Assembly: GCA_000708835.1 (NCBI GenBank)
Contig: DF236970.1
Span: 316,247-380,246, forward strand
Direction: 5' to 3'
DNA length: 64,000 bases
From: Klebsormidium nitens
Lineage: Eukaryota > Plantae > Klebsormidiophyceae
The notes under the pieces were generated by a model. It saw only the letters and a program-made list of their open reading frames with translations, had not been told where the DNA came from and made no database searches. Below, piece after piece: positions 5,801 through 63,157 of the stretch. The translations under genes and the position numbers were made by a program. How positions within the stretch are numbered: the stretch's first letter is position 1; each line of letters begins with the position of its first letter.

Positions 5801-8800
5801 TTCAAAGACTGGACGGAGTCGGAGATTGCGCATGCGGGCCACGGAGAAATCCTTGACGCCATGGAGCGGGAGTCGGAGGCAGCGTCCGGAATGTCCTGGC
5901 GGCTCATCCGGTGTAGCAACGGTGAGGGGCATTCACACGGGTGCATTCTTTCCTCATTGGTCTGGGCGCTTGTGAATTGACCTGAGGGCTTTTCACATGT
6001 GGTCTTGAGGTACTCCTTCGAGCGAGAACTCAACGAGCGCAATCATAAGACTTTTCTATCAGCACAAATCCGTTCCGTTGCTTTGCTACCCCAGCGTCTG
6101 ATTTCCGCTTCCCAATTTTGCAAGCTTTCTTATGAGTTCGACCATGTCTGCATCTGGTACAACTGGTGATTAGACTACTTCGATTGGTTTCCTCCTGTTG
6201 CTTATATTCCGTTCCTCTGCTCCCCTTCAGGCCTCCGGTTCTTCGAACAGATACACGACTCCGAGGACGAGGTGGGTACAATCACGCCTCCTTACGTTGT
6301 GCCAACTGGTTTCACGCATTTATCGAGAACTCAGCTCGAGCAACCCCGTTCTATTTCCGCCGGTTCATTTTGAACGTTTGTGTCTTTTTTCCCACTTTTC
6401 CTGAACCCAGGGTTCGGGTTAGAAAAACCTATGATGTGGCCGTTCGGAGAGGCTCTGCAGAGGTGCGAAGCACGGCTTTGAAGGTGACCATCCAGATGAT
6501 TTTGCCAAACTAGCGAGAGACAACGTATACGGACCTTGGGAGGAGTCCTCCCTTCTTTCGTCACCCAAGTTCTGCCATCTGACAGAGCCTGACCGACTTC
6601 GAGGCTTGCTGACAAGCCTTCCGTTTCCAACCTGGAACCTTTTGTCCTGATGTCTTTTCCACAATCGTCCAACTCCCGGTGCTCTTCCTTGCAGAACAAC
6701 ACCCGGACGGTCAAGTCCATCGGCATCGTGGATGCTCCTGCGGACAAAGTGTTTGCTCTCGTAATGAGCATGGGGAAGCTGCGGCTCGAGTGAGTCTTCT
6801 AAATCAGACGGCGAAAAGTTATCGTTGAGAAGGCAACGGACCGTTTGATTTGCTTGGTGACTCGTCCCCCGAGAGCAATCAATCTACTCACGGGCGTGGT
6901 GTTGAATGACGAGCACTCACTCTGTCGAAGTTGCTCCTTCTTGTTTGAAACGGAAGCTTTTCGGCTGCTACTGCAGACGAGCTCAGTATGCGAATCTCAT
7001 ATGTTTTTTTCGTGAGAGGCACATGCTTCGTCATTTAGTCTCTGCATAAGTTGTTGAGGTCCCACAACAGTTGCTGCTCAAGATCCAGAGTCGTTGCATG
7101 GATTGTCGCCACCTGCACAGCACGTAGCACTAACGCGAGCTAATCCTTACGAGCAGTCGAGTCTCATCGCCGTCAAGATCGTCAAGGCCCATAAATTCCA
7201 GAGGTTTCATCGGTCGTAGAGAACCCTGAAAACTGGAAGCAGTCATCGCCGGTCGAGACCTCGAATTCCTGAAACCTCTGAGCTCTTATCGCCCTCCAAA
7301 AACGTCTAATACCTCAAACCTCAACGGCGCCTGGTACTTCAGGTGGGACGCGGTGGTCAAGGAAGGCAAGGTCGTGGAGGAGATTGACGGCCACACTGAC
7401 GTCATCTACAAGAAGCTGCGGAAGGACTGGCACCGGGGCCTGGCACGCAGCAGGGATCTGCTCATTTCGCGCTACTGGCGGCGGACGGAGGACGGCAGAT
7501 ACGGTGAGCCGACATATATTGCAGTGGATCCATACTCTGTTCGGCAAAAGTTTCACTCCGATGAGAAGCCTGGGGCGTTCTACTCGGATCTTGAAAAGCA
7601 GAGGCCAAGCTAGAGGGTCCTCCTATCTGTGCGTGACAGCTTGTTGTCAAGACCCGACGTCCTGGCATCGGACACTCTTAAGCACAGGACGAGAGCGATC
7701 CAATCATGAGTACTCTTGCGATCCTTTGCAAGCTAAAGCTGGAGACCGTACCGGCCGTTTGCAGGGGTAATTTTAGTAGAAGAGTCTTTCTTCAACGCGT
7801 TCCCAATTCTCTCAGCTATTGGGGAATTATGCCCTTTCTCACAGCTATGGTTACGGGTAATTGATTCCAACTTGTTTGCTATGCTGACGGATCCGCATTC
7901 AGACCGGGCACCCGTGCCCCCGTGCGATCAAACATACTGACGAAAAGCTCGTGACTTCGGTGCAGAGATTCTGTACTTCCCAGCTCGACACCGGGACTTC
8001 CCTAAGAAGTTTGGAGTTGTACGAGTCAAGGTTGTCAGTAAGTGTCTGGCACAGCGCTTCTCTTTTGTCATGGGCCATGCTTGTTATACTGGTGGGACAC
8101 ATTGTTTCAGTCCCTTGGATAGAGTGACGGTTTGTTGAGCTTGAACAGCCATCCATCACCTTTGGAGGAATCAATTGGCTGACATCAAGCTTACGAAAAT
8201 GACCCAAAGGATGGATCCACGACGTCCGACCAACTATCCCGCTGCCATGCTACCAGCCCTGAACCTCGTTGTCCTCTCGTGCTCAATCAGATGAACGTCT
8301 TGCTAGCCTATCATTCAATTCTTCAAGCGTTGATCTCCCCGATGCAGCGCATTCTCATGTAACGACGAGGCACTTTTTGGTGCCAGTTTCTCCATGTCAT
8401 CATTATGGTCTTTCACCATCCCTCTTTGGCTGAGATCGAAGTGTACCCATTGCTGACGTCATCACTCTCTCCACAGGCGGCGGCTTCGTGATCTCCCCCA
8501 TGGCACCCGCCCGCGGCACCTCCTCCCCGTGCTGCATCATGAAGCACTCCACCTATGTTTAGGAATCCGCTGACATATGTATCTTCATTGCTGACGTCTT
8601 TACTCTCGACAGGTGGCGGCTTCGTGATCTCCCCCATCGCGCCCGCCCCCGGCACCTCCTGGCGGCGCTGCATCGTGGAGCACGTCACTGCACCAACCGC
8701 AAACGTCATAGAAAACCTGCTGACGTCCGTAAGACTAGTCAATGCTGACGTCATCACTGTCACCACAGGCGGCGGCTTCGTCATCTCCCCCATCGCGCCC

Positions 8801-44582: not shown

Positions 44583-47500
44583 ATGGCGTGGTTTTACACA
44601 AACGATCCACCACTTCATCGGGACGCCCTCGAGACGGCCACCCCTCGCGTGGTTTCCTTTCTGGGCGCTGCGACGGAGATAGTCTGTCTCCTGGGCTGCG
44701 AGGATTGGCTGGTGGGTAGGTCGCACGAATGCCAGCGGCCAGAGAGTATCTTGTCTCTGCCATGCGTGTCGTCAGCGGAGCCCATAGGAGATGATCTGGG
44801 CGCCATAAGCAGCCGGGAGATTGATGAGCGGGTGCGGGGGCTGGTGGAGCGGGGCTTGGCGCGATACAAGATCGATGCGGAGATGCTGCGGGATCTGCAA
44901 CCGGACGTAATCTTGACGCAGGACCAGTGCAGGTGGGATTGCGAAAACAAGTCTCTGAGGAGTTGAATCCCACACATAATATTGTTTTCATATTTCAAAG
45001 TCTTCATGTGATCTCTAACAATTATACTTTTATGTTCAAAGTACCTATTCAACAGACGTTCTATGTTCTGTTTGTCTTTTCGGTCTTGTCAGTGTCCAGA
45101 TTTGGGGCGGACTAATAGTATCTTTCGGGCTGCAGGAATTGCTGAGAGTCACATCTGACATGTGTGAAAATCGTTCAGGGTGAAAACTCAAATGGCCAGG
45201 CACTGTGCATTTCCAAGGGATTTTTTTGGTGGCCAGGTTCAAGAGCTGTTGGGCTGAGGTTTACGGTTTTCAGCGATATCTAGTGAAGTGATCTCGCTTA
45301 GAAGAAGCATGCGGTGGTGCATGCCTATAAAACTCCCTGCTCTAGAGCTCCAACTGAGAGATTTTATTTGGGGTTTTGAAATAGTTGAAAATTGTTCAAG
45401 TCTTCTTCAGTCTCGGGGGCCCGAAGTGGTGATTTCTGCGGTTTTGCACTATCGTATAAGAGAACCCGTTTCCTCTTGCTAGAAAGCGATACCGTGCATG
45501 GTGGCAATTGAAAAACTAGGATTCATTGGGCACCTCAAGACCTGCTATATGTGTGCCTCATCTAGTAGCAAAGCGTCCTGCCAGTTTGATCAATGCAACC
45601 ACTTTCGCAATCAGTGTTTGTCATGGGGAGATTAGGGGGAGAGGATCTATGGCCAAGTTGAAGAAGTGAGAACAACTTCTCAAAAACGTTTTCGGTTAAA
45701 GCACATTCTGCAGCGCACTAACCCTCACACTGCACGATTGCCTTTGTGAGGAAAGTGTTCTAAGTGTGCTGCGTTCCTAGGTTTGGACTTGCCCTGAGCT
45801 TGTAAGGTGACCTGTAATGCAAATTGCAGTCGCTCATGTAGGTTTTTCAAAAGGTAGAATGGCTTACTCGCAGCTTGTGCAAGGAGCTTCTGGCTTTTTG
45901 GTTACATATAGGCTCGTGTCTTCCTGATGTGTTCTTGCTCAGCCTCTTAATATTCCTCCCACGTCAGTATTGTATTGTTGCACCGCAGTTCCCAAAAACA
46001 GTCAAGAAGTTCCTGATAATTGGTGCTGCTGAAAGGGACCTTCTTATGGCTTCCTATATCCCCCGTATTAGTGGGTAGCATTCTTTACACATATTGGCCG
46101 TATCTCACGTGCCGTCCACATGACGACGGAGGTTTGAGTTCTTTATCTGGAAAAAGTGCCCCCTTTCGGCATTTGTCGACCTCAAATCCAGGCAATAGTC
46201 CTTGAAGGCGTGAAAGCAGATTTTGGTTTGGCTTGGCTCATTGCAATTCTTATTTTGAATGCTTGCGTGCAGTCATGTTCACAAGCCCTTGAATTGAAGC
46301 ATTCAACCGCAGTCCTTCTTGCTACTAACCCAAGAAGTCCACTGAATCCCTTTCTATATTAGTCTTTGCACTTGGCTTGGATTTCATTCTTAACACGCTT
46401 CTTGTAGTCAGGCCTTTAGTTCATCCACTCAGTCGAATCCCCAGCGATTTTGGCAACTCACCAAGCCAAGCCTCTCAATGAACTCCAACCACCTCTTTCC
46501 ATTCTTAGCCACATCCAACTATCACTGACCCTTGTTAGCGTCTCTGACCATCTCCCTTTTGTCCGAATCTCATCCCTGACTATCTCTACCCCTCTGCGTC
46601 TCTCTTTGCCCCATTGACCATATCTGCTTGTCTTTCATGTTCCTAACCCTCAACCACTTTTGTTCAGGTATGACCATGATCTAACTATCTTCAAAGCATA
46701 TGTGATCACGGCTAACCGTTCATGCTAACCGCATTCGCGCCACCTGTCCGCAGCGTGTGTGCCGTCACCCCCCAAGACCTGGAGTCCGCCTGTTCCCGCT
46801 TCTTCCATGAGGACCAGAAGCCGTGCAAGGTCGTGTCGCTCCGCCCCACCACGGTGAGCTCCTGCGCCTTAACTTTTCCTTTCCCTTTCTGCTTTTTTCC
46901 TCAAACGGTAGTTTGCCATCCTTGTCGCTTTACCGCTTGAAGTCTGGGTTTGGATCCTGCGGAAGATAAGGGTGCCCTCTCCGCTGTAGTAACCGCTGTC
47001 CACCTCTGCATCTCTATTTTTCTTTTGAAGTTGTGTAAGTACGAGCAAACAAGGTGAGTCGCTATTGGTTTTCAAAAGCACAATTGTTGTGTTGCCAAGA
47101 GCGGCTCGGTTCGGACTAATAAGTAGATAGGAATGTCCTCGATCATGTCCTTGTTTTCAGGAAGAGCAGGCTGTTGAGCGTTAACCGGTCTTAAGCATCT
47201 TTGATATTTAAATGCTTGCAAAGGGCTCTGGACGAAGCAACGTTGCGCCCCTCAGCGAAGTGACTCAACAGCAGTGGCCCGCGAGGGTGGCTATGACGAC
47301 CCTTGCGATTGGGGCGCTTTTACGTCCCAATCTTGTGTCGCTCCTTTCAGACCAGCCACTCACCTTGGTCAGCATGTTCGCATCTTTTTCTGTCGCCTCA
47401 AGCGTTCGGCTGGGCGCCGTATTGGAAAAACATGGACTTTTATGAACGGCTTCTCACGCAAGTCGCCGTGTGCCTTTTGAGGTGCACGAGTGCTATCTTC

Positions 47501-50500
47501 TGTCCTAAGCATTTCTCTACCCCGTATGTCGCATGTCACGGGATGCTCTCGGGGCCAGACTCGAAAGGTTTTTTTGGGTGCACCCTAATGCCTAAGGCTA
47601 GGTTTAAAAAAGAGTTGCATCTTGCCCTTCCACTGCCGGAGTGGTACCGAATGGTTCGACAACTCATGGAGAAGCTTGACACTAAGGCGGTTCGTTGTGA
47701 AGGGCTGTGAGATTGTGAGACTTTGTGGTGTCAGCATACACGTTCTTGCGTGCAGTCCTCGCCCAGTGACGGCTGTGTTGTCAAATGCTTGCCGCTTTGT
47801 CAAGAGCGTTGCTTGTCGATCCTTCCATTACTGTGCGAAGTTGCGCTGTGTTCTGACGCTACCTTCTTTGTTTGAGCGCTAATTGGTTGTTAGACAGGCT
47901 TTCAGAACGCCATCTTCGGTTGGCTGTGAAGAATGTGAAGCTGAGCCGGGTATTGACGCTCAGACCAGGACCCTCCAGAGAGCCGCCCTTTCTTGCCTCT
48001 ATTCCGCAGGCAACAATGGCCGTTGCTGTTCTGGTTTCCTCGCTCCCCCCCACTTGGCTCATTGTTGCATTTTCTTACAAGCGCGACCAGTTGGACAATC
48101 CTGATCCTAGGATCGTCCAAAGTGCTGAGGTTCTCTTTATCTGCTTCTAAGCTTAAATTTGTCTGTGATGCCCGTTTTTGAATGCATTGCACCTTGCTTA
48201 CAGTCAGCCGTTTGTAACCGCCAGTTGTTCATGTGTCGCTTGTGCGGATTGTCATCCCGTTATCAGGGGCACCTTTTTACTCAGAAGCAATCCAAGTTGC
48301 TTATTGATGGCTTGGATGCAGCTTTCAAAGCTGGGCTCGACTGCCCAAGGATACAGAGATGCTGATGCCACGTGTCGATCCCTTCCTTCGATCGTTAATC
48401 AGTACAACTTGAACGCCCAAAAGCTGAGATTCTTACTCGGGTTGAGGAGTAGTGGCACCTCGATCTGCGCGATTTCGTTCAACAATATCAAAGCTCATCT
48501 AAGCTACTTCCAACTCAAGACCCTTCACAAAGCGGCTCAAAAGGTTCATAGCTCGTTCCTTCCCTTCTTTGAGGTCTCTTCGCGAAACAATTTGGTGTTG
48601 AAAGTGTGCATGAATGAAGTGCGCACTTTCTCGGACTGAAGAATAGGAAAGCGTCGTAGGTTGCTCCGGCCCCAAAGAACTAGGCACTGTGTGCAGTCCA
48701 TTGATTGGTCTTGTCAATCTGTCTGCTCAAGGCCGAAATGGCGTCTGTGGCATTCATAGCGTGCCAGTCTTGCGAGTGAGCCCTTCCTGACGCTTATGCC
48801 ATGAAGTCCTTTCTTAAAAGCGTGTTCGTGTATGTGGTAGTACATCATTGCATCAGCAAAGAGCGGTTTGGCTATGACGACGCAGGATGAGCGGAGCAAC
48901 ATTCGTGCTAGCTCATCCACGCTATTTTGCCCGAATGCCATCCGACCAAGCGAATGAGAAGGCAGATTATCTGCCAACGAAAAGCCCATTTTGAGCTCCA
49001 AGTGCATTGCCTTCTCATGCTCTTCTCCTTTCAGCAAGACTGCTTGCAAAAGCCGCCTTTATTTGGACACTCCTTTCCTTTCGCTTTTGGTCTCATCCGG
49101 ATCCGTTCATCCTTTCAAAGCGCCAGGCGGACCAACAGTCCAACTGGCTGTGAAAGAGCTTCTGTTCTTCTGCGTTCCTCACGGGAAAGCGGGTCAAGAG
49201 AGTCATAAGGGCGGCAAGCTCGTACGTTGTCTGTAGAGTGGGCAATGAAGCAGACCAAAATGAAGCGCACTGCTTAGTGATTTCAATGGTAATTTTTTGT
49301 TGGATGCCATAGCGTTGCTTAAACCCTATGATTGGGCCGGTTGTGGCTAATGACTTTCTCGTGCTTTGAGATGATGGGGCAATCTGTCGTCAACCGTGCT
49401 GTTGTTCCTTCTTTTAGGACGATTTCCAACTGTTAAAGAGTCATCCCGGTAGAATGTAGGGTCCTTATTTTGCGCTTCTTAGGAGCTTTTTTTGTACGAT
49501 CCCATTGCGACTGAGATTTTTTCCTTGGAAGACGGCTAGACCCAGTCAGCATGTCATGACGTTGGCGACTTTCGCTGTGTTCGATACTCTTCCTCAACCC
49601 ACTGCGCAGCGTTGCAAGAAGCTGCGTCGTAACGTAGGGTACCTTCCTCTCGTCTGATCAGATTCCCACCTTCTGTTCTGCGCGATGCTCCGACGGGTGA
49701 AAGGACGAGCTAAATTGGTCTTAAATTTTACCGTTCCTTCTACAAAAAACCAGTCTTCGGACTGCTCTAATCATTCGTTGTTGGCACAAGTTTCAGCGCC
49801 GGCGATGATGCCAACGCGTGTTGGGTTATGATTAGCCCAGGGGGTTTTTGAGAAGCCATTGGCCGAAGCACCTGAATGATCGTGAGAAAAACTCTGACGC
49901 ACATCGATCTTGGACGGAGTATGGTTGTGGCCCCGATGAAGCTGTAGTTTGGCTGCTGCTGCCACTTTTGAAGGTTTAAAGTGGCAGCAGGAACTTCAGC
50001 TTGATGCCACGGTTTCCGAGTGCACTTGGATCCGCCTGTTGGCACGTGACCCTAGAATCCGCCTCGATTCTACTTGATGGCTTCACGTTACCAACGCCGT
50101 AATTACTAGACAGGTGGCCGAAGGGGTTCGACACTGTTTACCAGAGGACACTTTTATCCAGAGGAAAGCTGCTCAGAACGTGGATTTGTCAGAAAGAGGG
50201 CATGTTTGGGGGCTGTGAAGTCGGTGGAATTGATCGCACTTTGGCGGTCAGTCGCCTAATGACGAACCCGATTGCCAACGTCAAAGCTGTCGAAGAAGGG
50301 CAAGGAAGGTCAGACAAGCAGTCATGTCGCTCGTCCTTTCACCTCCATATCAGCGTCGCAATCTGCGAGGCGCGATATGCGACAAAGCCGACTGGTGCTC
50401 TCAAACGGTTGGTGGGGGGCTGTGAAGACTGCTGGGCTGAGGTGGCGCAGAATTTGGCAGCTCATCGCCAGCGCTGCAGGGATGTCTGAGTGCCACTCGT

Positions 50501-53500
50501 CTTAACTTTTGGGTTTTGATTTGCAATCAAACTCTCCTCGCGGAGCTAGTAAGGAGTATTCGAGGATTGCGCGACGTTTCCAATCAGCAAAGTCAGCTCG
50601 CTTGACCGGCCTGCATAACCAAAGCTTAACGGTTTTCAGTACGACTGTCTGTAAGTAGTCTGCTTTCAGTTCGCTTGATTATCCCTTCGGTCCGGCAAGC
50701 GAGCAGGCACTCGCGTGGCCGACTCCTTCTTGAGTCATGAGTATCTCAGTCGAGTGGTTGCTGATGTTGGCAGTTGCGGTAACCTTCTTCCTTTTCTATC
50801 TTGTTTGCTCTGGGCGGTCATCTTCTTCCTTTTTCTATCTTATCTGCTCTGGGCAAACAGGACTATGTTCGTGCTTCGCTTCGTGCTCTCATCTTGTTGT
50901 GATAAGTACACAGAAATCCGCCCGCGTTTTTGTTCCGAACTCACATGTCGACAAAGTTGTACTGCTGTGTGGGCTTCAGAATCCACAACATCGTTATTTG
51001 AACCAGTCGACCGTTCTTGGTCGCAAATGCTCTGGCCTCTTGAGCCTTTTTGACTCGTACAAGGGCGAATCGTGCTGACGAGTGGAGGACATTGCTTTTG
51101 ACACCCTCCATGAAGAGTCTGACTTATCAAAGCTGGTGCGTAGGATTAGAAGCTGCTTCGTGCGATTTAGAAACAAAAGAGCTTGCTGGCTGCCAAACAT
51201 GTTGGACAAACTGTGGGATGGGATGCGATACCTGCTCTGGGTTTGAACTGCTCATCGGTGTCATTCTGAACTGATGCCCACCCCGGAGAGCCTTCAAGGT
51301 TTCTCAAGTAACCGTTATACACCCTCTACCACGAGATATCGTCTGCTTGGTGTTCGTGTCATGCAACAATCTCGGACCTTCGTTCTCTTGCTGAAAGAGT
51401 CTGTTTCAAGGTAGTATGCTTGTGAAAGAATTGTGTTCCTCACGTTTGCCTCTTTCTGCGCTCGGCCGGCAGCGAGTGATTTCTGGATATTCAGCGAGCC
51501 AACGATGGCATTGGGGATGCTCGTAGCACGGAAGGGTGCTTTCTGAAGTGCCATGGCCGCCAGGATCTGAGTGCTGAGGCGGATGCCATCCGTCGGCTGA
51601 TTCGGCACGCTTTTGATCCAATGTGCTCCCAAGAAAGTTCTTTCTGCCACTGTGTTGCAAAGACGAAGTCTCTGTTTTTATCTGATTGGCAAAGACGAGA
51701 CACCCAGTCTTGAGCACCTCGGTGGGGCCTCAGTGCACTTGTAGCGTCCTCTATGAGCCAATTTTTAGACACCATTATTGTCCTGCCTCGCTCTTTGGGT
51801 GATCCCTTTCGCGTTGGGTTCGTTTCTCTGAGCGCAAAAATGGCGATGATGGGCTTTTACATGGGCGGCGCCCAGATGTGGGCCTAGGTTGACGCCATCT
51901 TTCGAGAAAGAGGGTACGAACATGTGTCCACTCTCCATTCGTTGCCGACTGTACAGCGACACCTCTGTGCCACAGCACGTCTTTAAGTTTGTCTGTGAAA
52001 AGCAAGTTGAATACGTTCTTCATCAGTCGTTTACATATCCCAACCGTTAGGAACGAGAATGCGTCGACCAAGTTGCAGGATTTCGACCCTCTCGAGCATT
52101 TTCCATGTTTTCGTCTCGATCTGACATCTTCTGGACTATGAAGAGTTCATTTCGTAGGGTTTGGTTCTAAGGAGTCATTGCCAGATTTCAGCTCCTTGTT
52201 GTTCGCACGATGCACTATACATCATGCTGCACTCTTGTCAGCAACTGCACAAAAGTTGTTGCACGATCCAGAATTCCGAATGTTGAATCTTATGCAGTCT
52301 CCCGTTGTCAGTTTTGGTTAGGCTAGGACGAGGCTTCTCCTGAGGACTAGAACACCGGTCCTTATTCTTGGTAACCCTGAGGTCCCTCTGAGGCCAAATC
52401 TCGTTTGGGCACACGAGAGACTCCATGATCTGTTGCATGCTGATTCTGCGTTTCGACTGCACCTTTTCAGCGTCTACAAATGCATGAGAGCGCGGTCTCA
52501 CACCAACGCCTGGCATGTCGCTCTGCGCGTGAGGTCATGTCTTTGTTGTGGATTGGCACAAAAGCTGCCCACTCTGCTTTCGCTGGCTTTTGAGAGGGAA
52601 AATTCTCACAACATCCAATCTTGCGGATGTCTTCACTTTTGGCAAGGGAGCAATGTTGGAATTCTGGTCCGTTGGTAGGTAAAGATGGTTCGTCCGCATT
52701 TTCTGCATTCTTATCACTTTCGACATGTGGTAGAGTCTTATGCTCAGTTTGGTAAACAAAAATTGCACGGTATAGTCTGACCCTCTCGCCAGCGCACTGG
52801 ATGTGTTTCTGAAAAAAGTTAGTGGTCCTTTTAGTGTGTATCATGATGTCGGTAAGTCCACTATTATCAGGGCAGACTGGTAATGACAAAGTTTCTCTGA
52901 GAGTGCAATCTCAAAAATCATCCGTTGTCCGGACGCCAGTTACGCATGTCGTCAGAGGGGTTGTTGCAGTAGTGGTACAACGAACAGCTTGTGTCTCTTG
53001 CGTTGTCAGGACCGTTAGCAAATCTCGCCTGCAAGAAGAAGCTTTTCGTATGACCTGTCAGAGGGACGCCTTGAGAGTGCAACTGCCCTTTTCCGCTCTC
53101 CAATTTATCTGCGGCGATCGTTTGGATGATCTTTGCCACTGGATCCACCCATTCTCCCGGATCTGTGCTGGGGTTGAAGCGTTGCGCTTTCACAAGCCCT
53201 TAGGGGCAACGAACAGGCGCGCTACTTTGACAGGCGACTTTGACGGTCTATTCGGAATGAATGATGCAGGACGACGTGAGCAACCTGACCGGAATTCGGC
53301 GTTTGAGATTAGTGACCGAATGAGTTCTATGTCAATGCTTGTCGTTCTTGGCTGCCACATCGGGATTGTTGGAGGCTGGTGCCTTTAATGGCCGAGTTGC
53401 CCCTCTTCTCTCCCTCTTCTCCCACCCTGTATGGTGGGCTTTTCTGGGATTTTAGTAGAAGGACCGAATAACCTGCATGTTTCGTTGGTATAGATTGCAC

Positions 53501-55318
53501 ACATCGCTTAAATTAAAGTCATCTTCCCAATAACCACATATCTGGTATTCTAGCTACTGCTGAGTTCCTCGAGCAATTGCAGCCTTACTCCACCCCCCCC
53601 TTTTACAGCCCACGTTCTAATGAAGAGACGAGTCGGTGCAAAACAGGAACTGCTGCCTTGACCTTCCATTTTGCGGCCCTTTGCGTTCTGGAATCTAACC
53701 CACTGGTCTGGGTGAGACTTTGCCGAAAGCTTCTGATCCTGATGGCTCACTTTCGTGTTTTCAAAGGGTGCATATCGGTCTTATATTCCGAGTGGAGATT
53801 GTAGCTTTTGTCTGGTGCTTAGATACTGCCGTCAACTCTGTCTCGAGTCATTTGTGGCATTGGCGATGATCAGGACATATTGGGCATTGTACCGACCCAC
53901 CAAATGTGGTCGTCTGCCCATGACGCCGTTGCTCTCATTGGCATCCTTTGCATGCTACCCTCTCGAAGTTCTGAGTGCCGCGCCGGTTTTGTGAGCTTGT
54001 AAGCTAACATCTCGTCTTTCTTTCGTCAGCTTCAAGATGCTCTAAGTTCTTGGCACGTTTTTTGAGTACAGAGATGTTCGGAATCACTTGTCTTGTTTGC
54101 AAGAGCGTCGAAAGAATGGTCAGTAACTCAGAGATCTTCTCGAACGCCGCTGGCACTTGACTTTCATGGTAATCAGCACCTGTGAGCATTGACATGTGGC
54201 CGATACATGTTGCTGATAAGCTTCGACGCTTCGGAACGGGTTCCTGCATGCTTGAACTTCCAAGTATGGGCATTATGCAAGCCTTTTTGCGCTTTGCTTT
54301 CCTTCCGATATTTACCGCCGGTTCTTCTGGGCTGTCGGCAGACGGCACGCTGGCTATGAGTAACGCTCTTTGAGATGCCCCTGTGCGCGTCCCAATGAAG
54401 CACGATTTCCCAAGATGGTATGTATCGCACCAAAGCCAGCTTGTCTTGCAACACTGCTCGGTAGGGAACTGCCATTGTCCATTTATTGTTAGGATCTAGA
54501 AGCGAGGTTGTGTTTGCGAATATTTGTGTGTCACGTAACACCGACTGTACACCCTCCGACATTCCGGAAGGGACAGAAGCGCGATCCTCCCTCTGGTCGA
54601 GTCCACGTGGCTGTGCCGGCTGCCAAAATCTCCTTCTGAGCAACTTCGATCACACATCCGTTCTCAACATACCGCAATGCTTGGCAAACTGCAGACCTTG
54701 TCCTCGTGGTTTCCAACTCAGGCCAAGAAAACATCCAATCCTTGGAGTCGTTCAGGCATCCGTCAAAGCCGCGTATTGATGCTTCGAACGTCCATCTTCT
54801 CTGCAGATGTCCGACGTTTGGGAGAACGTCCGGATCATCGCCGACGCCCTCAACGTGTCCGAAAAGGGCGAGGCGCTCATCAAGTCGCTCCGAGCGGAAT
54901 GGGACTCGATCCGGCGGAACACCCCCCAGTACAGCGACGGAATGCCCCCCCTCAGCGTCGCCTGTCTCCAGTGGACCGACCCCCTGATCGGCGCCGGTTA
55001 CTGGGTTCCCGAAATAGTTTCCTGCGCCGGGGGGGTAAATCTGCTGGGTGAAAAGGGGGGGGGCAGCCCGAAAGTGACGCTTGAAACCCTGGCGGAAGCC
55101 CAGCCAGAGGTTATCGTGGTTATGTGCTGCGGGTTAGGCCTTGACCGTGGGGTTAAGGACGTGGAGGCGCTGGAGAAACAGGCGGGCTGGGCGGGGTTAA
55201 GGGCGGTTAGGAACGGAAGGGTTTATGTCGTGAATGGGGACGAGTATTTCAACACGAGTTCGGCGGCGGCGGCGGTTGAGAGCGCGAGACTGATGGCGGA
55301 GATTTTGCACGGCGGCAG
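44583..55318 (+). other. Periplasmic-binding-protein (class III helical backbone; BtuF/FepB/TroA_f-like) domain, exons 1-3 of the large gene
   Basis: PRVVSFLGAATEIVCLLG...LVGRSHEC; YKIDAEMLRDLQPDVILTQDQCSVCAV; VACLQWTDPLIGAGYWVPEIV; PEVIVVMCCG; WAGLRAVRNGRVYVVNGDEYFN. I recognise these as motifs of the bacterial cobalamin/iron-chelate-binding family. Confidence 0.88.
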
Positions 55319-58300
55319 GTGGGATTCTGGGCGTCACTTTTTTGTATTGCAGAAATACTTGCTTGGCTGTTTCTTCCGGGCTTGGTTTGAGTCTGTTTCA
55401 GTGACTTGGTCGAGGTCACAAGCATTTGTATTGCGAGTCGATAGTGGAGGAGACTCTGCTTTTGAGTTGGGTGTTTTTGGGTTACTAGCTGCTCCGAAGC
55501 TGAGGATCTTGCCTATTTTGTCTCTCGTGGTTGATTCTTTTTCTTCGGAGGTTTGTGATAAGCAGGAGTTGACGTCGTTGGATTGTCCTCCCAATCTGAC
55601 GTTCTTCGACGCTGTTTGATGTGGCTGTCAATCACTGCATTCGTCCGTTCAACATTTCCGTCCGGTCCGCCATTCCGATCTCAATTATCAGTGAGCTCCT
55701 GAACCCCTGAGTAGATCCCTGAATCCGTACTCTCTCTCAACACAGCGTGGTTTCTGTCAGGCCCACTACTAGCTGCTTTCAATAGTCGGTATTGTGGAAA
55801 AGCCGCCTCACTTGTGGAGTCAGGTCGGAAGCCAAGAAGAACGGCCACGAATTTGCGCAAGCAGAGTTGGCTGATATGCTTTTGGTCCTTCTCGGCCCTT
55901 GCTTCGTTCGTTCCTCAAGAACTCTTGCCGTAACCAGATGTGGAATGTGTCAACCCTCTTTCTATAATTCGTCGGAGACGGTGTTCCCGTTGCTCAGCCA
56001 CCGGAGTTGTACTACGCTTTGGGTTTCTGCCATTGCCATCCAAGATCGAGTGAAGGCCGCCGATTCCTTCATAGTTGACATGTACTCCTCCTTTTTCCTA
56101 AAAGGTCGGGTCTCGAAGGCAGCGCCTACGTCAGGCGTCCCGCCATCTCTCCGCCAACCGACGTCAGCAGTGACGTCAGCGCAGTCCCTCGGCCCGCCGC
56201 GCACCCCAGGCGCCCCCCTCCCCTGCCCACGTGGCTCCAGGGTGCGGAGACCAGGTCGCAATCCAACGGCGGACATTTTTCGGGGGGGTCAGACTTGCAC
56301 AGGGAGAAGGGGGGTGCGAACGGGCATGCGCATGTAGACAGTCCCCGAGCAGAGAGCCCAGTTTCCACTCCGGGGGGGTCCGGTTTCAGACTGTTTGAGA
56401 GTGCGGCTGGCACCCCCCCGTGGGGGGGTTCGCCGATGGGCTCGAGCCCCGGGGCAGCGAACCCCCCGGAAGAGCGGGAGGAGTTCTGGATGGGGAATGA
56501 TAGCGACGAGGAAGGCTGGACGGGGAATCGGGACGTGGTTCTGGGGGGGTTCTCGGATTCGGACAGTGAGTCCGACGATGATTTTGAAAGCCTGGTCGAA
56601 TTGCCACTTGCCGAAGCGAAGTGGTCTCTCGAGAGAGGGGGGAGGGAAGGAGAGGCGTTAAGCGAAGGTTCTGGCCTAACCCAGGGTCTGGTTCTCGACA
56701 GCGAGCTGGACGCTATTGCAGAAGGGGTGCGGAGGCGCGAGAGTGAGGAGCGGAGGGGTAACGTCAATGAGGCGGACGTGACGTCAGGTGAAGTGGGTAG
56801 TGCGCGCCAGGCGCAAACGGAGCCGGTTAGCAAACCAGCGGGGATGGGTTACGGTTCCCGTGCGAAAGCGCAGCCGCTGCCGGTGCCCAAAAGAGGCGAG
56901 TTCTCATTCGATACCAGCTCGGCGGGTCACCCTAACTACGATCTTAACCCGCCGCCGGAACCTAGAAGCTGGCAGGAGCCACGTGTCCTCTCGCCCGACT
57001 CGTTGAAGTCGTCGCCAACGCGATGGCCCTCGTCGCACCCCCCCACGTGGCCCGAAACCCCGAGGACACCGCAAACTCCCCCGAGCCTGGACGAGTTCGA
57101 AAAGCAGTTTCCATTTGACTTTGGCCGGGGCCGGAGGCAAACGGAAACGAACTCGACCAGGTTTGCAGACGAAGCGGGTTTTGGTGTCCGTGAAGAGAAG
57201 GAGTTTGGGTCGGAGAAGGAGGAACTCGGCAGGGGGAAAGAGTGGCTAAAGGACAGGTCAAACTCACTCAGCGACGATAGACCGGGGGTGCGCGGAGCAG
57301 AAAAAGTGCGCCCCCGGCTTGAAGTCGAAACGACAGGGCTGACCGTTTTCGAGGGGCCCCATTCCCCGCTGGAGAGCTCCGGTCCACATGCTGCAGGAAA
57401 CAGCGGATCGCCGGAACTAGAGAGCGTCTCGTTAGAGTCTCCCAGAGACCGAGGCGAAAGGGGGGTGGAAACGGCGGGCAACAAGTCCCCCCTGGAGGGA
57501 GGCGGTGTCGAGCACTCGGCCTTCAAGCGCATCCATCTCGTAGGGCGGCCCCTCTCCCTCGACGTCAGCAAACGGCCCGACGCCGACGTCAGCCCGCCCC
57601 ACGCTGACGTCATCACCCCCCCGGCGCGGCCCTCGACTCCCCCGCCAGTCTCGCCGCCCCCACCCGGCGAGCTGCTTTCGCCGATGGCATCTCGTCCTGG
57701 GTTTATGGCTAATCTGCTCGAAACCCAGACCCAAACTTCCCCCCCGCTGAGTCCCATTCCGGACTCCCCCTACGTCGCGCGCCTCCGCCCCCGAACCGCC
57801 CCTCCAAGCCCCCCAACTTTTCCATGCTGCCAAACCCGTCCGATCTGCCCGCGCTTATGGACCTCGGGAGCGTTCCCGCGCTCAAGACCCTGTCGCCCAT
57901 TCGCACCGGGCGCCATTTCACACCGGTGCCGACGTCCCCGCCCTTCGCGCCGGCGGAGCTCCCGAGGGGGCTGCCGGTATTCCCGGCTCTGGATCTGTCG
58001 CGGGGGGGGGGGCAGTCTTCCCCTTCCCCCCCTAGCAGCCCTTCGCTGTCCCCCCTTTCCTCCCCGCTGGGAAACGGACGGTTACGGGAAAACGGTTACC
58101 GCCCCCCAAAATCGCCTAGCTCGCCGCAAGCTCTGGCCTCGCCTCGGTTCTCCCCTCTTTCTGTGCTGCCCTATCTCAGCTTGGACGCGTCCCTGGATCC
58201 GTGGTCAAACCCTAAAACGCTTGACCCGGCGGAGTTAGTGGAAGAAACCGGGTTAGAGCCGATGGAAACCCTGGGGGGAGAGTCGGGGTATGATAATGAT

Positions 58301-61300
58301 ATCAACAGCTTGGAGGATAGCATTCGGAGGAGTATGGACCGATGGATGTGGGGGGAGATCGGAATGGAGGGAGTCACGGCGGCCGCTGGTAAGGCCAGGT
58401 TTTCTGTCAAGGTTTCAGTCGGTGCTGATCTGGGGATTGTTTTCTGTATGAATGGAGTATTGCACATGTCGAGCTTCGCCGATATGTTAAAGAATTCAGA
58501 CAGTCCGCGCTTCTTACCAGTGGAAGAATTGATTTTTGTCAAAATTCAAGGTATCTTGATCAGTCCAAGAAAAAATTGGGTTCTGGAATTATCTGGACCA
58601 GTCAGAAGGGTTCCGTGATCTCTGTTGACTGGAAGCACACCTGTAATTCTCGTCATGCAAGTGCTCGCCTTCTGTTACTGCGTGATTGACCTTCTGCTTA
58701 GTGAAAGCAAAGCTTGATTTTAAAGGCTTCATACTTCCAAGAAGGCCTACAGTTGCAAAAGTTTGCGGCTGTCAACGATAGATGGTAACTGCTTTGTTTC
58801 TAATGTTGCCTCTTCCTCCAACAGGGCTGGACAACGTCCAATCCACTGGCGCCGACTTCCCCTCTGAGGCAGGGCCCGTTTCGGACGCTGACCCTCGCAC
58901 ACCTGGCACCCCTGAGGGCGTCCGTACGGCTTCTGAGGGCGTTCGTACGAGTGCTGAAGGCGGCCGTTCAGTCTCGGACGACGTCCCTGGAGATGCGGAA
59001 GGCGTCCGTACGGCTTCTGTGGCCGTCCGTACTGGTCCGGAGGGCGTCCAATCGGCTTCTCAGGGCGGTCGTACGTCTGAGGAAAGCGTCCGAACAACTA
59101 CGAAGGGCGTCCGAACGTCTTTTGAGGGCGTCCGAATGCGTCCGCTCACGGCCAAAGCGGAGGAGCTGAGAACCGTTTTGGAGGAGGCCGTCGAGGCGGC
59201 CCTGCCTGCGGACTGCATCATTCTGAGTGGGGGGCTGGACACGTGTGTACTAGCGGAGTTGGCAGCGGCGGGGGTGGGAAACGGAACGGACGGAAACGGA
59301 ATGAATACGGACGGAACGGATGCGGACGGAATGGGTGAGGTCAAGGACGGTGGTGGCAGAGTGGACGAAGAGCAGTTATCTGGTACGGGAAACAATATGC
59401 CTATTAACGAGTATGGAGAACTCAATGATGACCCGCTTAAAAGGTTAGACGAGCATAAGCAAGCAGAGGTCCGCATACATATGCAGCAGCCGATAAGCAA
59501 TAGCACGACCAGGCCCACTTCTATAAGCGCTCCCCGGGCAGACAGCGTTCTAATCACAGATCAGTCGCAGAGCTATGATAAACGCCCAGAGCATATAGAT
59601 ACGAGCAGCGCAAACGCCGCCAATCGTCAAACGACAGGTGAAATAAGCAGGGAAGGTCAGCAAAAGAGCGCAGAAACTGCGTCGAGAATAAAGGAAGCGC
59701 TTACGGTTCTTACGGGGGAGCATGCAACGGACCGGCGGTACGCGGAAGAGATTGCGAAGCGGTGCGGACTGCGCCATACGGTGGTGAGTGCAGCCTGAAG
59801 GCTTATGGATCCTGCTCTATGACAATGTCACATTCTTGAGGTTTTATCCATCCCGCTTCAGAATCTGATGCACAGATGCGAAACCGTATCAATCTTTCTC
59901 CACGAGGTCACAATCTCGAGATTCTACTCATCCCGCTTTCTCAGGATAGCATATATCATCAAGGTCTATCTCTCCTGCTCTATGGCAAAGGCAGATTCTT
60001 GAGATGGTTTTCATCCCGCTCTACCACGAATTTTCAGCCTTAAGAGTTCTATCATTTCGCTCTAGACCGACACGCGGCCTCCCAAGATGCTCGAGACGCG
60101 GAGCTGAATCTTCTGATGCGAAGTACAATAGTTCTAGCTTCCACGGGATCCTTCAATCTCATCACTACGAAGTGCCAAATTTTGTATTTTTCCATCCCGC
60201 TCTAGATCGAGACGCGGACGCCCGAGGCGCTCCTGGATTCGGAGCTGGAGTTTGTTGTGCAGACAATATTAACTCTAGCTACCACAGGCTCCGGCCACAT
60301 AAAAGTTACGAGCTAAATTCTGCTGTTCTTTTTTATCCCGCTCTAGATCGAGACGCGGACGCCCGAGGCGCTCCTGGACCTGGAGCTGGAGTTCGTCGTC
60401 CGCACGCTGCGGACGTTCGACCCGATGGAGGTCCGCAACAGCATCGCAGTAGCGGCTGCGCTGCGGGAGGCACACAGACGCGGGCACACGAGCGCGATCA
60501 CCGGAGACGGGGCCGATGAGCTGCTGGGGGGGTGAGTGAACTCCTGAGACTCCGCTCAGACTTAACGTCTCTTTCTAGATGAAATGTAAAGTTCACAAGA
60601 ACGGCCTGGGAGAGGGCGGAGTGACGGGTGCACACGAGCGTGATCACCGGAGACGGGGCCGATGAGCTACTGGGGGGGTAAGTGCACTTCTGAGAGTCCG
60701 CTCAAACTCATTTGTCGTTTAAGAGACTTCGATCATGTTTGAAAGGACGTTGGTTGACTTTCAAACCTGGGGGAGGGCGCAGTGACGGGGCCACACGAGC
60801 GTGTTTAACAGGGCGGCGACAGGGCCGGTGAGCTGCTGGAGGGGGTGAGCAATTCGCATTGTTTACTGTTTTGTGAATCTGAGCTTTGTTGGGTTTAACA
60901 GCTCTTCTTGTCTCAAAGTATTTGATCTTTTTAAACCCCCGAGTGTCACAGGTTTTGCCGAACTGGGCACACCTTTCAGGAAACCCTCCCGCAATCACTA
61001 GCGACGAGGCCTATGAGCTACTGGGGGGGGGGGGTAATTTGCTGAGAATCCGCTCGAGGTCGGTTTTGTATACAGCACTGCTTTTCAAGATGTTTCCTAT
61101 CGCGCCATCGCCAAGTCAGACAGAAGGTTGCGGAATATGCACAGCGTACATAACGGATCATTGCAAACATCTTAACAGTTGTGTTGAAATAGCAGAATTT
61201 CGACCAAATTCCGAAAAGGTGCTCTTCAATACGCTGCTTTGTTACAAGTCGGATCCAGACCGTCTTAAAGAAGGCACGCCCTCAGGCATCCTCTCCCCAT

Positions 61301-63157
61301 CATTTCCTGGCTGCCTCCTACTCCCATTTCTGACGTAAATCAGCGAGTCATAGCAACGTTTTGACGCATGCTGCACACAAAATCATGTTTGCATGAGTGC
61401 AAAGGTGCCCAGGAATGCTGCGCACTCAGATCTTTCACGTAAATTAACGGATACCTCTCGCCTATCAGGTACTCGTTCACGCACGGCCTCTCCCCCGAAA
61501 AGTTCGCCGAGTACCGTACCCATCTGCGCTCCGTCATGCGCTTCTCCGCAGTGCCGCTCGGCGCGGCGCTCGGGATCGAAGTCCGACAGCCGTACCTCTT
61601 CCCGAAATTCGTCGATCATGCGCTCGCCAGTCTGGCGCGGGAAGATCTAGTGGGCCCGGTTCCGGCGGACCTGCTGACGGAGAGCGTCTGGAGCGGAATT
61701 GAGCGGACTTGCCGGGCGGAAGACTTGGGAAGGCTGGGCGGGGAAACCGTGCACGGGAAGTTGGCGTTAAGGGAAGCGTTCCCCGGAGTCTATGCGGCGT
61801 GGCGCAGCAAGGACCCAATCGAGGTGCGCTTATGATCGTATTTCGGAGTAACAAGCGCGGGTAGCGATTTTTGACGACCTGTTGGAAAACCTGTGCGCTG
61901 ATGATACTTGCTCTCCCGTTTCTTCGTTGGCAACTTGAGGCGTCTGCTGCTTATTGAGTGATTCACGCCAGTTGCGATTGCATTTGACTGGTTCAGAATC
62001 CGGCTCTTAGAACCCCACCAGCAATCAGTACGCGACAGATTCCCAAACGTTTTCGTGACCGCTTATTTGACAGAACCGTCACACCACCTTCAGGCGCACT
62101 TACCTGGATCATAACCGACACACTTGCGTAGAAGAGGGCTCATTGAGACACCATCCAATCCTAGGGTTGTGCCTTTCTTTTTTCCTAATGAATCTGCCCT
62201 AAATCTGGCCACACACAGCTCGTCGGATGAAGCCTGCAGACTGGCATACCGTGTTGGAGCAGAAGAGACTTTTTGTCTCTTGCCACTGTATGTTATGACC
62301 GCTCGAGGGCCCCTCAAGCTCGTTTTTAAATACCATAAATTCCTGGTGAACCGCTCATCATTGTTCGTCGTTTTGCAGGTCGGGTGTGGCACCACCGTCC
62401 TCCCCGCCCGCTTCAAAGAGGCCCTGTCCGACGCCGAGTTAGCGGCCGCCCAGAAAAAGATACTCGCACAAGACCAGGTAAGGATCCGGAACGCGGAGCA
62501 CTTGCACTACTACAGGGCCTTTCGGACGGTCTTCGGACCGGGGGGCCCGCCCGAAATGGTCCGGTGGGGTGCGGACCCGTGCGTCGCGTGCGGGTATGAG
62601 CTCCAGCAACCGAGCCAGATGTTTTGCGTGGTGTGCGGGGAGTATCCGGCCAGGAAAGCGGCGGGGGGGGTGAAAAGCGCCGGGGGCCAGGGGGGGGAGA
62701 GGAAGAGAAGCAAGGGGGGGGCTTGCAGAGTGGTGAGGGGGTGGCCACGGGGGAGGGAAAAAGTGGCGGGATTGGGGAGGGGAATGAGGGGGAAAAGGAG
62801 GAAGGGGGAATGCGGATTGGAGGGGAGAGTGCGGCAACGGGCGACGATCAGCCGAGTACAAGTGGGTGGGGACAAGAAAGCTTGGGAAATGAGGGGGGTG
62901 CCAGCGGCATGGTCGAAAGGAAAACTCCGAACGAGGGGAAGGAGACGGTAGGGGCGAGTGGGCAGCAGGTACTTGCTACTGCCGTTTCGGTCCTTGGGGA
63001 AGAGAAAGGGAACAGCGCTTTGGAGAGGGGGGCAGTGTTCGGTGGGCGGAACGAAAGCCCAAGGTTGCTAGCAACTGTTTCAGGGACGTCGTCGTCTGCG
63101 GACTCGAACGAAGATTATGCGTCGGCTGATGAGTGCTTCGACGAGTCGGACATTTGA
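44583..63157 (+). CDS. Putative fusion gene (~1840 aa): BtuF/TroA-like substrate-binding domain + long disordered linker + asparagine-synthetase-like ATP-PPase + Zn ribbon + acidic tail
   Basis: Exons 44583-44932, 46754-46853, 54807-55318, 56105-58388, 58825-59783, 60347-60531, 61469-61823, 62379-63157. All intron phases match (2,0,2,1,0,2,0). The model needs two single-base (-1) frame corrections, near homopolymers at ~57739-57745 and ~62663-62697. The start codon and possible extra small exons at 55786-56049 are uncertain. Confidence 0.65.
58914..59140 (+). repeat. Coding 21-bp minisatellite (7-aa EGVRT[AS]S repeat, ~9-10 units)
   Basis: Variants of 'gagggcgtccgtacggcttct' translate as PEGVRTASEGVRTSAEGGRS...EGVRTAS...KGVRTSFEGVRM. 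Confidence 0.9.
59150..62660 (+). other. Asparagine synthase C-terminal-like (N-type ATP pyrophosphatase) domain with terminal CxxC-CxxC zinc ribbon; no glutamine amidotransferase domain
   Basis: PP-loop ILSGGLDT; FDPMEVRNSIAV; ITGDGADELLGGY; EVRQPYL; GKLALREAF; WRSKDPIEVGCGT; EHLHYYRAFR; CVACG...FCVVCGEYP. Confidence 0.9.
59820..61035 (+). repeat. Splice-junction duplication arrays flanking the FDPMEVRN/TGDGADE exon (60347-60531)
   Basis: 'catcccgct..ag' acceptor copies end at ~59861, 59944, 60065, 60205 and 60346 (real). 'gagct.ctggggg|gt' donors lie at 60532 (real), 60678, 60845 and 61034. Confidence 0.93.

Follow-up and report, generated by a model that had tools for sequence, protein, structure and literature searches.

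Does the alga Klebsormidium nitens join, in one gene, a binding domain of the type known from vitamin B12 uptake with an asparagine-synthase-like enzyme, and if so, what would such a protein do? The question is raised by a stretch of 64,000 nucleotides (nt) of contig DF236970.1 (assembly GCA_000708835.1, positions 316,247 to 380,246, forward strand), here called the window. An earlier note, made from the letters alone, had proposed that exons between 44583 and 63157 encode a BtuF-like domain fused to a glutaminase-less synthetase, which might capture and amidate or remodel a corrinoid or other metal chelate. The spliced fusion was confirmed, and the interpretation was supported: operons, a riboswitch and two further fusions connect the enzyme family with cobamide salvage, and the fusion protein looks like an undescribed eukaryotic B12-handling enzyme. 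Eukaryotic B12 handling is known almost entirely from the human cbl genes; corrinoid processing, repair and remodelling in algae, oomycetes and early fungi are largely open.

Contigs of four public sequencing runs from four studies were aligned to window positions 54700-60600. Single contigs of 5291 and 5189 nt joined the stretches 54806-55316, 56103-58387, 58824-59782 and 60346-60533, and all stretches that they skipped were bounded by GT and AG at their ends. Since these joins lack introns at canonical splice sites, the runs, whose RNA origin was only guessed, derive from spliced transcripts. The joint from 55316 to 56103, which connects the binding-domain exon with the linker exon, was present in all four runs. 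In the window, the corresponding boundaries (marked by a slash) are the donor GGC GGC AG/GTGGGA at 55318/55319 and the acceptor CCTAAAAG/G at 56104/56105; the linker exon ends with the donor GCT G/GTAAGG at 58388/58389, and the exon carrying SGGLDT begins behind the acceptor CAACAG/G at 58824/58825. The in-frame splice from 55318 into the Pro/Ser-rich exon and the phase-1 splice from 58388 to 58825 had both been predicted, and the spliced contigs, for the former from all four studies, bear them out. The contigs also continue into neighboring exons: the 30 nt preceding 54806 match 46823-46852 (exon 2) exactly, and the letters beyond 60533 are an exact match to 61471-61500 (exon 7). As had been claimed, the binding domain and the glutaminase-less synthetase domain are encoded by one spliced mRNA, with a long disordered linker between them, and we consider it practically certain that the gene is a genuine fusion of the two. 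Intron 3 (55319-56104, + strand, GT..AG) is spliced out in the main transcript form; contigs covering it were found at about 5% of exon depth, and a minor form retaining this intron exists.

The reading frame of the window breaks within exon 4 (56105-58388, + strand), which encodes a linker of about 760 residues and ends in phase 1. In a GC-rich patch of about 50 nt at 57760-57808 (+ strand), six small indels (net -2 nt) and four substitutions set all covering contigs, which come from runs X1, X2 and X13 with two organism labels, apart from the window. This mismatch is probably a local assembly error causing an apparent frameshift. The shift by -2 nt carries the frame of the open reading frame (ORF) 56295..58238 into the ORF 57824..58618, and with it every exon phase fits, so that 4743 nt, or 1581 codons, are reached by the end of exon 7. 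The correction of the frame postulated earlier was therefore right in its effect, but the cause is not the single homopolymer that had been assumed.

The corrected frame spans about 1,670-1,770 residues, and the C-terminal zinc ribbon ends near residue 1670. The tail 3' of the ribbon (62655-62900) contains several poly-G runs, is rich in Gly, Glu and Lys, is open in two frames and is not conserved in two related loci (L001 and L002). The transcript contigs end, judged by length, at about 62665; in the frame of the window a stop is met at 62951, and the previously given gene end at 63157 would need another frame change within the poly-G runs. At the 5' end, an in-frame TGA stop precedes the ATG at 44583 by 12 nt, and about 20 residues of the protein come before the fold's first strand. 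The product has no hydrophobic leader and no signal peptide, which agrees with the cytosolic location that had been suggested for it.

Two introns deserve mention. Intron 2 (46854-54806) is about 8 kb long, splits the binding domain and has many ORFs, 60-190 residues long, on either strand. In the region 60477-61029 around intron 6, the last ~40-86 nt of exon 6 recur together with its donor as three decaying copies in tandem, located at 60623-60708 (90% identity), 60805-60844 (68%) and 60990-61029 (83%). The first copy retains the donor GGGGGGGTAAGT; the aligned transcripts use only the true donor at 60531/60532.

The same gene organization was found in relatives. Within the 10-kb flank available for comparison, the order of exons 3 to 8 is kept in L001 and L002, as are the donor ILHGG AG/GT, which is identical, and the acceptor phase. 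The domain exons are 78-86% identical (exon 3, 84-86%; exon 7, 80%), the linker 36-46%. Uninterrupted linker ORFs, 41-46% identical to exon 4, are present on long JGI contigs (P0001, P0002). In every domain exon synonymous codon differences outnumber non-synonymous ones, for exon 3 by 57 to 24, and both halves of the protein are therefore under purifying selection. A search for the architecture showed that the fusion recurs further away. Peripla_BP_2 followed by the enzyme was found in Chara braunii (GBG72075.1), in Closterium strains NIES-53, -54, -65 and -67 and in the transcriptome protein P0076. Prasinoderma coloniale, a B12 auxotroph (PMC7455551), has a compact version of 973 residues with two tandem binding domains and a short linker (P0213/P0227); the His and Cys motifs occur in its second binding domain but not in the first.

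Which ligand would the binding domain hold? The window was searched exon by exon; in these searches, limited by query length or to distant cluster representatives, the annotated protein of the gene itself did not turn up. The domain is spread over exon 1 (44583-44932, + strand), which has the start codon and the N-lobe including the motif SHEC (44721-44732) and ends in phase 2 within the codon run QDQC/S; exon 2 (46754-46853, + strand), which supplies the second Cys of a CxVC motif (VCAV, 46755-46766) and opens the inter-lobe segment; and exon 3 (54807-55318, + strand), which encodes the C-lobe with CLQW (54963-54974) and MCCG (55122-55133) and ends with ILHGG AG/gt without a stop. Exon 3 matches Pfam Peripla_BP_2 with 1.1e-15 and 58.2 bits, above the cut-off of 27.5 bits; exon 1 has a weak match (0.15) and aligns to the N-lobe of the binding-domain subfamily described below, and the full domains of Chara, Closterium and P0076 score 39-64 bits. 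Modelled with AlphaFold, the orthologous domain P0076:236-545 has a predicted local distance difference test (pLDDT) score of 90 and consists of two alpha/beta lobes that a long helix connects; its best PDB matches are all of class III with E of about 1e-15. The N-terminal domain is a member of the class III (BtuF/haem-type) binding-protein fold that lacks a signal peptide. ESM Atlas feature searches with exons 3 and 7 returned only fragments of the two Pfam families.

Some of these matches would suit a different ligand, namely haem, a siderophore or another metal chelate, which the enzyme would then amidate or ligate. By sequence the closest solved structures to exon 3 are haem binders (5gj3, 4.7e-6; 2r7a, 6e-5), ahead of BtuF (3.5e-4), and the top NCBIfam match is IsdE, with Btr also matched. 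By structure, Foldseek groups BtuF (5ysc, 1n4a) and the haem binders ShuT, PhuT, BhuT and RhuT together as closest to the P0076 model; the template modelling (TM) score by target is about 0.8 against the small tetrapyrrole binders, and siderophore binders match more weakly. We nevertheless regard a ligand of this kind as unlikely, given the company in which the enzyme family is found: it is fused elsewhere to MMACHC and CobY-like domains, it is encoded among CbiZ, CbiB, CobD, CobT, CobS and CobU genes and behind a cobalamin riboswitch, and no haem or siderophore genes were seen among its conserved neighbors. The ligand had been left as a corrinoid or some other chelate; these fusions, the salvage operons and the riboswitch favor the corrinoid.

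The binding domain also has relatives of its own kind. Binding proteins encoded directly beside the enzyme in loci L038, L042, L032, L041 and L043 match the algal domain with 1e-33 to 1e-55, and transporter BtuF proteins of L023, L028 and L029 with only about 1e-12; the former are leaderless, and the latter have a hydrophobic leader. The subfamily has an extra helical N-lobe insert of about 45 residues, and its alignment shows as invariant the His of S/T-H-E-C, Cys-x-Val-Cys, Cys-Gly and two Trp. Judged from this conservation, the invariant His and three Cys might serve as ligands to a corrinoid's cobalt or to a separate metal.

The C-terminal module is encoded by exons 5 to 8. Exon 5 (58825-59783, + strand) runs from the end of the linker into the synthetase, whose PP-loop SGGLDT (59226-59243) it contains; a low-complexity insert of about 135 residues (about 59265-59693) follows. 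Exon 6 (60347-60531, + strand; joint from 59782 to 60346) contains FDPMEVRN (60416-60439) and TGDGADE (60500-60520); exon 7 (61469-61823, + strand) the middle of the domain with GKLALREAF (61755-61781); and exon 8 (62379-62951, + strand) the end of the synthetase with the CxxC...CxxCG.YP zinc ribbon (62580-62648). These exons tile a family profile of 321 positions in order, with E of 1e-9 to 1e-32 per exon: exon 5 covers positions 6-44 and 44-80, exon 6 88-138, exon 7 141-234 and exon 8 235-321. All motifs of the family are kept (SGGLDT, FDPMEVRN, TGDGADE..GGY, GK..LREAF, WR.KDPIE and the ribbon). The match begins about 25 residues before SGGLDT; upstream of it lies disordered linker without a family match, and an N-terminal Ntn-type glutaminase domain is absent. 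The linker exon 4 itself, about 2.3 kb long and composed of 13% P, 13% S, 10% G and 9% E with short conserved islands, matched no Pfam family.

The module belongs to a tight, unnamed archaeal-eukaryotic family of glutaminase-less asparagine synthases with a terminal zinc ribbon. Could it simply be an ammonia-dependent asparagine synthetase that was incidentally fused to a binding domain? Public sources do label members of the family 'asparagine synthase', exon 6 matches Pfam Asn_synthase (8.9e-5, 22.7 bits, cut-off 21), and archaeal members match positions 210-513 of the AsnB model at 1e-54. However, the scores against AsnB models are only 15-19 bits for the exons and 160-185 bits for whole archaeal members, and thus far under the equivalog cut-off (184 vs 499 bits). 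Exon 7 alone has no Pfam or PDB match, and PDB sequence searches with exons 5, 6 and 7 gave nothing useful. The missing glutaminase, the family's own invariant motifs and ribbon, and a genomic context of cobamide salvage add to this, and we consider an ordinary asparagine synthetase highly improbable.

Members of the family are about 320 residues long, as indicated by word searches and cluster look-ups, and a search with exon 7 among 1.84 billion cluster representatives gave only 82 matches. Archaeal members occur in Asgard groups, Bathyarchaeia, Hadarchaeota, Nitrososphaerota and Thermoprotei, and there are a few bacterial ones. Members from early-branching fungi come from chytrids, Allomyces, Basidiobolus, Kickxellomycotina, Mortierellomycotina and Umbelopsis; other eukaryotic members come from Acytostelium, Corallochytrium, Cyanophora, Galdieria, a brown alga, Botryococcus and Myrmecia. 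None was seen in land plants, Dikarya fungi or animals among the identified family proteins, for which the lists are partial. Cobalamin use has been reported for all non-Dikarya fungal lineages (PMC8085122). In a maximum-likelihood tree of 63 rows, all eukaryotic sequences fall on one side of a 100/100 branch, apart from a prokaryotic clade of 31 rows; the metagenome proteins P0144 and P0154, which are unplaced, lie outside that clade, and the fused forms of streptophytes cluster together. Since the tree separates eukaryotic from prokaryotic rows, the family looks old in eukaryotes and not recently transferred. The system had been proposed for an early streptophyte, but it is not confined to such an alga, the family being present across many eukaryote groups. 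A recent transfer of a prokaryotic gene pair to the algae was also considered and found no support, the eukaryotic enzyme domains standing apart (100/100) from those of prokaryotes with an adjacent binder.

In other organisms the same enzyme module has other partners. An MMACHC-like domain precedes it in the oomycetes Aphanomyces, Thraustotheca and Globisporangium and in two transcriptome proteins; the N-terminus of the Thraustotheca protein matches Pfam MMACHC above cut-off (1.4e-11), and with a profile of the N-termini, human MMACHC structures are matched at about 1e-8. A CobY-like nucleotidyltransferase precedes the enzyme in a Thermoprotei protein (P0209) and at a Nitrososphaerota locus (L008); this domain matches TIGR00454 at 2e-39 and the model of adenosylcobinamide-phosphate guanylyltransferase at 5e-31, the latter below cut-off. 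Further architectures combine the enzyme with a diphthamide-synthase-type C-terminal piece (P0019, Corallochytrium), a polysaccharide deacetylase (P0051, Entophlyctis) or DUF924 (P0048, Cyanophora), which could reflect genuine fusions or the merging of gene models.

Gene neighborhoods of prokaryotic members point in the same direction as the MMACHC and CobY fusions. A scan of species-representative genomes found the family in at least 560 species. For the best 80 prokaryotic loci, ORFs were called, neighbors were clustered and cobamide genes were recorded within 8 kb. At least one cobamide gene was present at 39 of the 80 loci: CbiZ (Pfam 1.5e-45) at 26, a BtuF-type binding protein at nine, CobS at eight, CbiB and CobD at six, and archaeal CobT at five. 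A nitrilase-type hydrolase, mostly directly adjoining the enzyme, was found at 23 loci and a Dph6-like PP-loop protein at 12. The suggested check for co-occurrence of the two halves in prokaryotes was positive, in that the two families are adjacent genes in several archaeal and bacterial metagenome-assembled genomes.

Hadarchaeota and Dehalococcoidia have co-directional operons, and linkage to cobamide genes was also seen in Bathyarchaeia and Nitrososphaerota. The Dehalococcoidales locus L023 consists of thirteen abutting + strand genes in the order BtuF, BtuF, unknown, BtuC, ATP-binding cassette (ABC) ATPase, CbiB, CobD, enzyme, CobT, CobS, CobC, Dph6-like, CobU. A riboswitch scan of 11 loci identified a cobalamin riboswitch preceding this operon (L023 1030-1173; 40.8 bits, cut-off 31.5). 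In the Hadarchaeota locus L037, CbiB, CobT, CbiZ, CobS, CobY, a Dph6-like gene and the enzyme are all read in one direction. The gene neighbors of the stand-alone enzyme in Spizellomyces and Acytostelium were uninformative.

Some neighbors are of interest in themselves. In Bathyarchaeia, a protein of 300-301 residues with an invariant F-C-x-C-x-R-C (cluster c4) is encoded by two copies that flank CbiZ near the enzyme gene (L047:3599-4516 and 5969-6853), and it also occurs at 18 other Bathyarchaeia loci. It has no Pfam, NCBIfam or PDB match; that it might be a diverged binding protein was rejected with an hhalign probability of <1%. A 377-residue ORF at L040:4211-5344 (-), near CobS, a Dph6-like gene and the enzyme, is CobY-like over residues 1-195 and has about 180 further residues of unknown kind.

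Taken with the fusions, this context makes it likely, in our view, that the family works on or with corrinoids; that the algal domain would bind one is suggested by this context, since sequence and fold do not separate B12 binders from haem binders. The binding domain might instead be a B12 sensor that switches the synthetase, whose substrate would then be unrelated to corrinoids, e.g. an amino acid or a protein carboxylate. Domains of the class III binding fold do act as sensors in regulators such as Btr, which was among the NCBIfam matches, a tether of about 870 residues does not force transfer of a substrate, and the Corallochytrium enzyme is fused to a diphthamide-synthase-type domain. In prokaryotes, however, the enzyme is encoded inside operons whose remaining genes all act on the corrinoid, and its fusion to an enzyme, CobY, is hard to explain as a sensor. 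Hence, a purely regulatory role appears improbable.

For the algal protein we propose the following sequence of events. One expressed gene would yield a cytosolic protein of about 1,700 residues, composed of a binder, a long disordered tether and a PP-loop enzyme. The binding domain would hold a corrinoid, either vitamin B12 or an incomplete or damaged form of it; the PP-loop domain would adenylate a carboxylate on this corrinoid using ATP; and the adenylated carboxylate would be converted to an amide with ammonia or another amine, thereby salvaging or repairing the cofactor. Amide formation is suggested by the chemistry of the AsnB fold and by a pairing with a nitrilase-type hydrolase like that of NAD synthetase. 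In Bathyarchaeia the hydrolase encoded next to the enzyme resembles the glutaminase region of NAD synthetase (8e-11), and such a neighbor fits amidation with ammonia. We somewhat favor the view that the protein is a cytosolic corrinoid-handling enzyme which probably forms an amide on a corrin carboxylate; that the reaction is specifically a side-chain amidation is proposed only tentatively.

A more specific variant places the reaction at the f-side chain. The enzyme would join the f-side-chain carboxylate of cobyric acid to the aminopropanol linker, or activate this carboxylate, and so work with or replace CbiB in rebuilding the nucleotide loop after cleavage by CbiZ. CbiZ is indeed the commonest cobamide neighbor, the CobY fusion indicates the step immediately before CobY, and adenylation of a carboxylate followed by amide formation is typical of the fold, as established for AsnB and beta-lactam synthetase. 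But CbiB is encoded in the same operons (L008, L023, L029, L031, L037), the nitrilase-type ammonia donor beside the gene suggests ammonia as the nucleophile, and the examined eukaryotes that have the enzyme are not known to carry CbiB or CbiZ. Action at the f-side chain or linker amide is therefore doubtful, and its assignment as the step catalyzed by this family is equally so.

Several observations weigh against a corrinoid-amidating enzyme in general. Of the 39 cobamide-linked loci, many belong to a single lineage, Bathyarchaeia, and do not count as independent cases; in this lineage the CbiZ and nitrilase-like genes are transcribed divergently from the enzyme. Loci of Nitrosopumilaceae, which are among the 80, have no cobamide neighbors. 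The operons already hold CbiB, CbiZ and the usual genes for loop assembly, which leaves no obvious gap among the known steps. In sequence and in fold, the binding domain is as close to haem binders as to BtuF, and its invariant His and three Cys could, on the same alignment, bind a separate metal or cluster. Finally, animals use B12, yet none was seen among the relatives listed.

The wide distribution of the family permits a broader reading, which we consider possible without holding it to be the probable one: an ancient PP-loop amide ligase, common to archaea and many B12-using eukaryotes (green, red and brown algae, glaucophytes, oomycetes, early-branching fungi, a slime mould and Corallochytrium), would be a missing enzyme of corrinoid salvage or repair. 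Its tethering would have happened on three separate occasions, with a BtuF-like binder as partner in green algae, MMACHC in oomycetes and CobY in archaea. One candidate reaction is the re-amidation of deamidated B12 side chains. Hydrolytic deamidation of these side chains gives inactive carboxylic acids (PMC9822362), and a re-amidating repair enzyme would thus have a natural substrate.

Three different fusions, conserved operons and a riboswitch converge on one uncharacterised enzyme family, which makes it a concrete candidate for a new salvage or repair reaction. In the literature, we found no paper in which a protein of the asparagine-synthase type was connected with MMACHC, CbiZ or the salvage of corrinoids. 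If the broader reading is true, a new step, lacking in the human pathway, would be added to the B12 metabolism of eukaryotes. Should damaged or incomplete corrinoids be restored by it, this would bear on the forms of B12 that are bioavailable to phytoplankton and soil microbes, and the enzyme might be used as a tool to make or repair cobamides.

How does this protein compare with known systems? The nearest proposal concerns the DUF71-B12 subfamily of Dph6-like PP-loop ATPases; because its genes cluster with btuFCD and cbiB, it was predicted to take part in B12 salvage through a reaction as yet unknown (de Crecy-Lagard et al. 2012, PMC3541065). DUF71-B12 is likewise of the PP-loop amide-ligase type and corresponds to the Dph6-like neighbor at 12 of the 80 loci, but it constitutes a different PP-loop family (Pfam Diphthami_syn_2, not Asn_synthase). 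The glutaminase-less AsnB family with its zinc ribbon and its eukaryotic fusions are not described in that study, and we found no follow-up characterisation of DUF71-B12; the present family would be a second PP-loop enzyme besides this uncharacterised one.

With BtuF and the haem-binding proteins ShuT, PhuT and BhuT, the algal domain shares the two-lobe fold with its long helix and a Pfam match above cut-off. It differs from them by the lack of a signal peptide, lipid anchor and ABC transporter partner and by its fusion to an enzyme, and from the transporter BtuF also by the N-lobe insert of ~45 residues and the invariant His and three Cys. MMACHC (CblC) fills the place of the algal binder in oomycetes, N-terminal to the same enzyme module; the algal binding domain, however, is of unrelated fold, and MMACHC is not part of the algal gene.

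The enzyme half has the PP-loop SGGxDT/S and the motifs TGDGADE...GGY, R.P(Y/F)L and GK..LR in common with AsnB, beta-lactam synthetase and lasso-peptide cyclases, and it is collinear with the synthetase half of AsnB. In contrast to AsnB, the family has no N-terminal glutaminase, ends in a CxxC...CxxC zinc ribbon, has invariant motifs of its own (FDPME.RN, M.FSS.PL) and resides in a genomic context of cobamide salvage. NAD synthetase (NadE) shows the same division of labor between a nitrilase-type hydrolase and a PP-loop enzyme as the Bathyarchaeia loci, although hydrolase and enzyme are separate, divergent genes there and the algal fusion contains no hydrolase domain. A precedent for the ATP-dependent amidation of corrin carboxylates is provided by CbiA/CobB and CbiP/CobQ. 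These enzymes, however, have an unrelated fold (a MinD/ParA-type ATPase with a triad glutaminase) and serve de novo synthesis, whereas the family described here is encoded in salvage operons.

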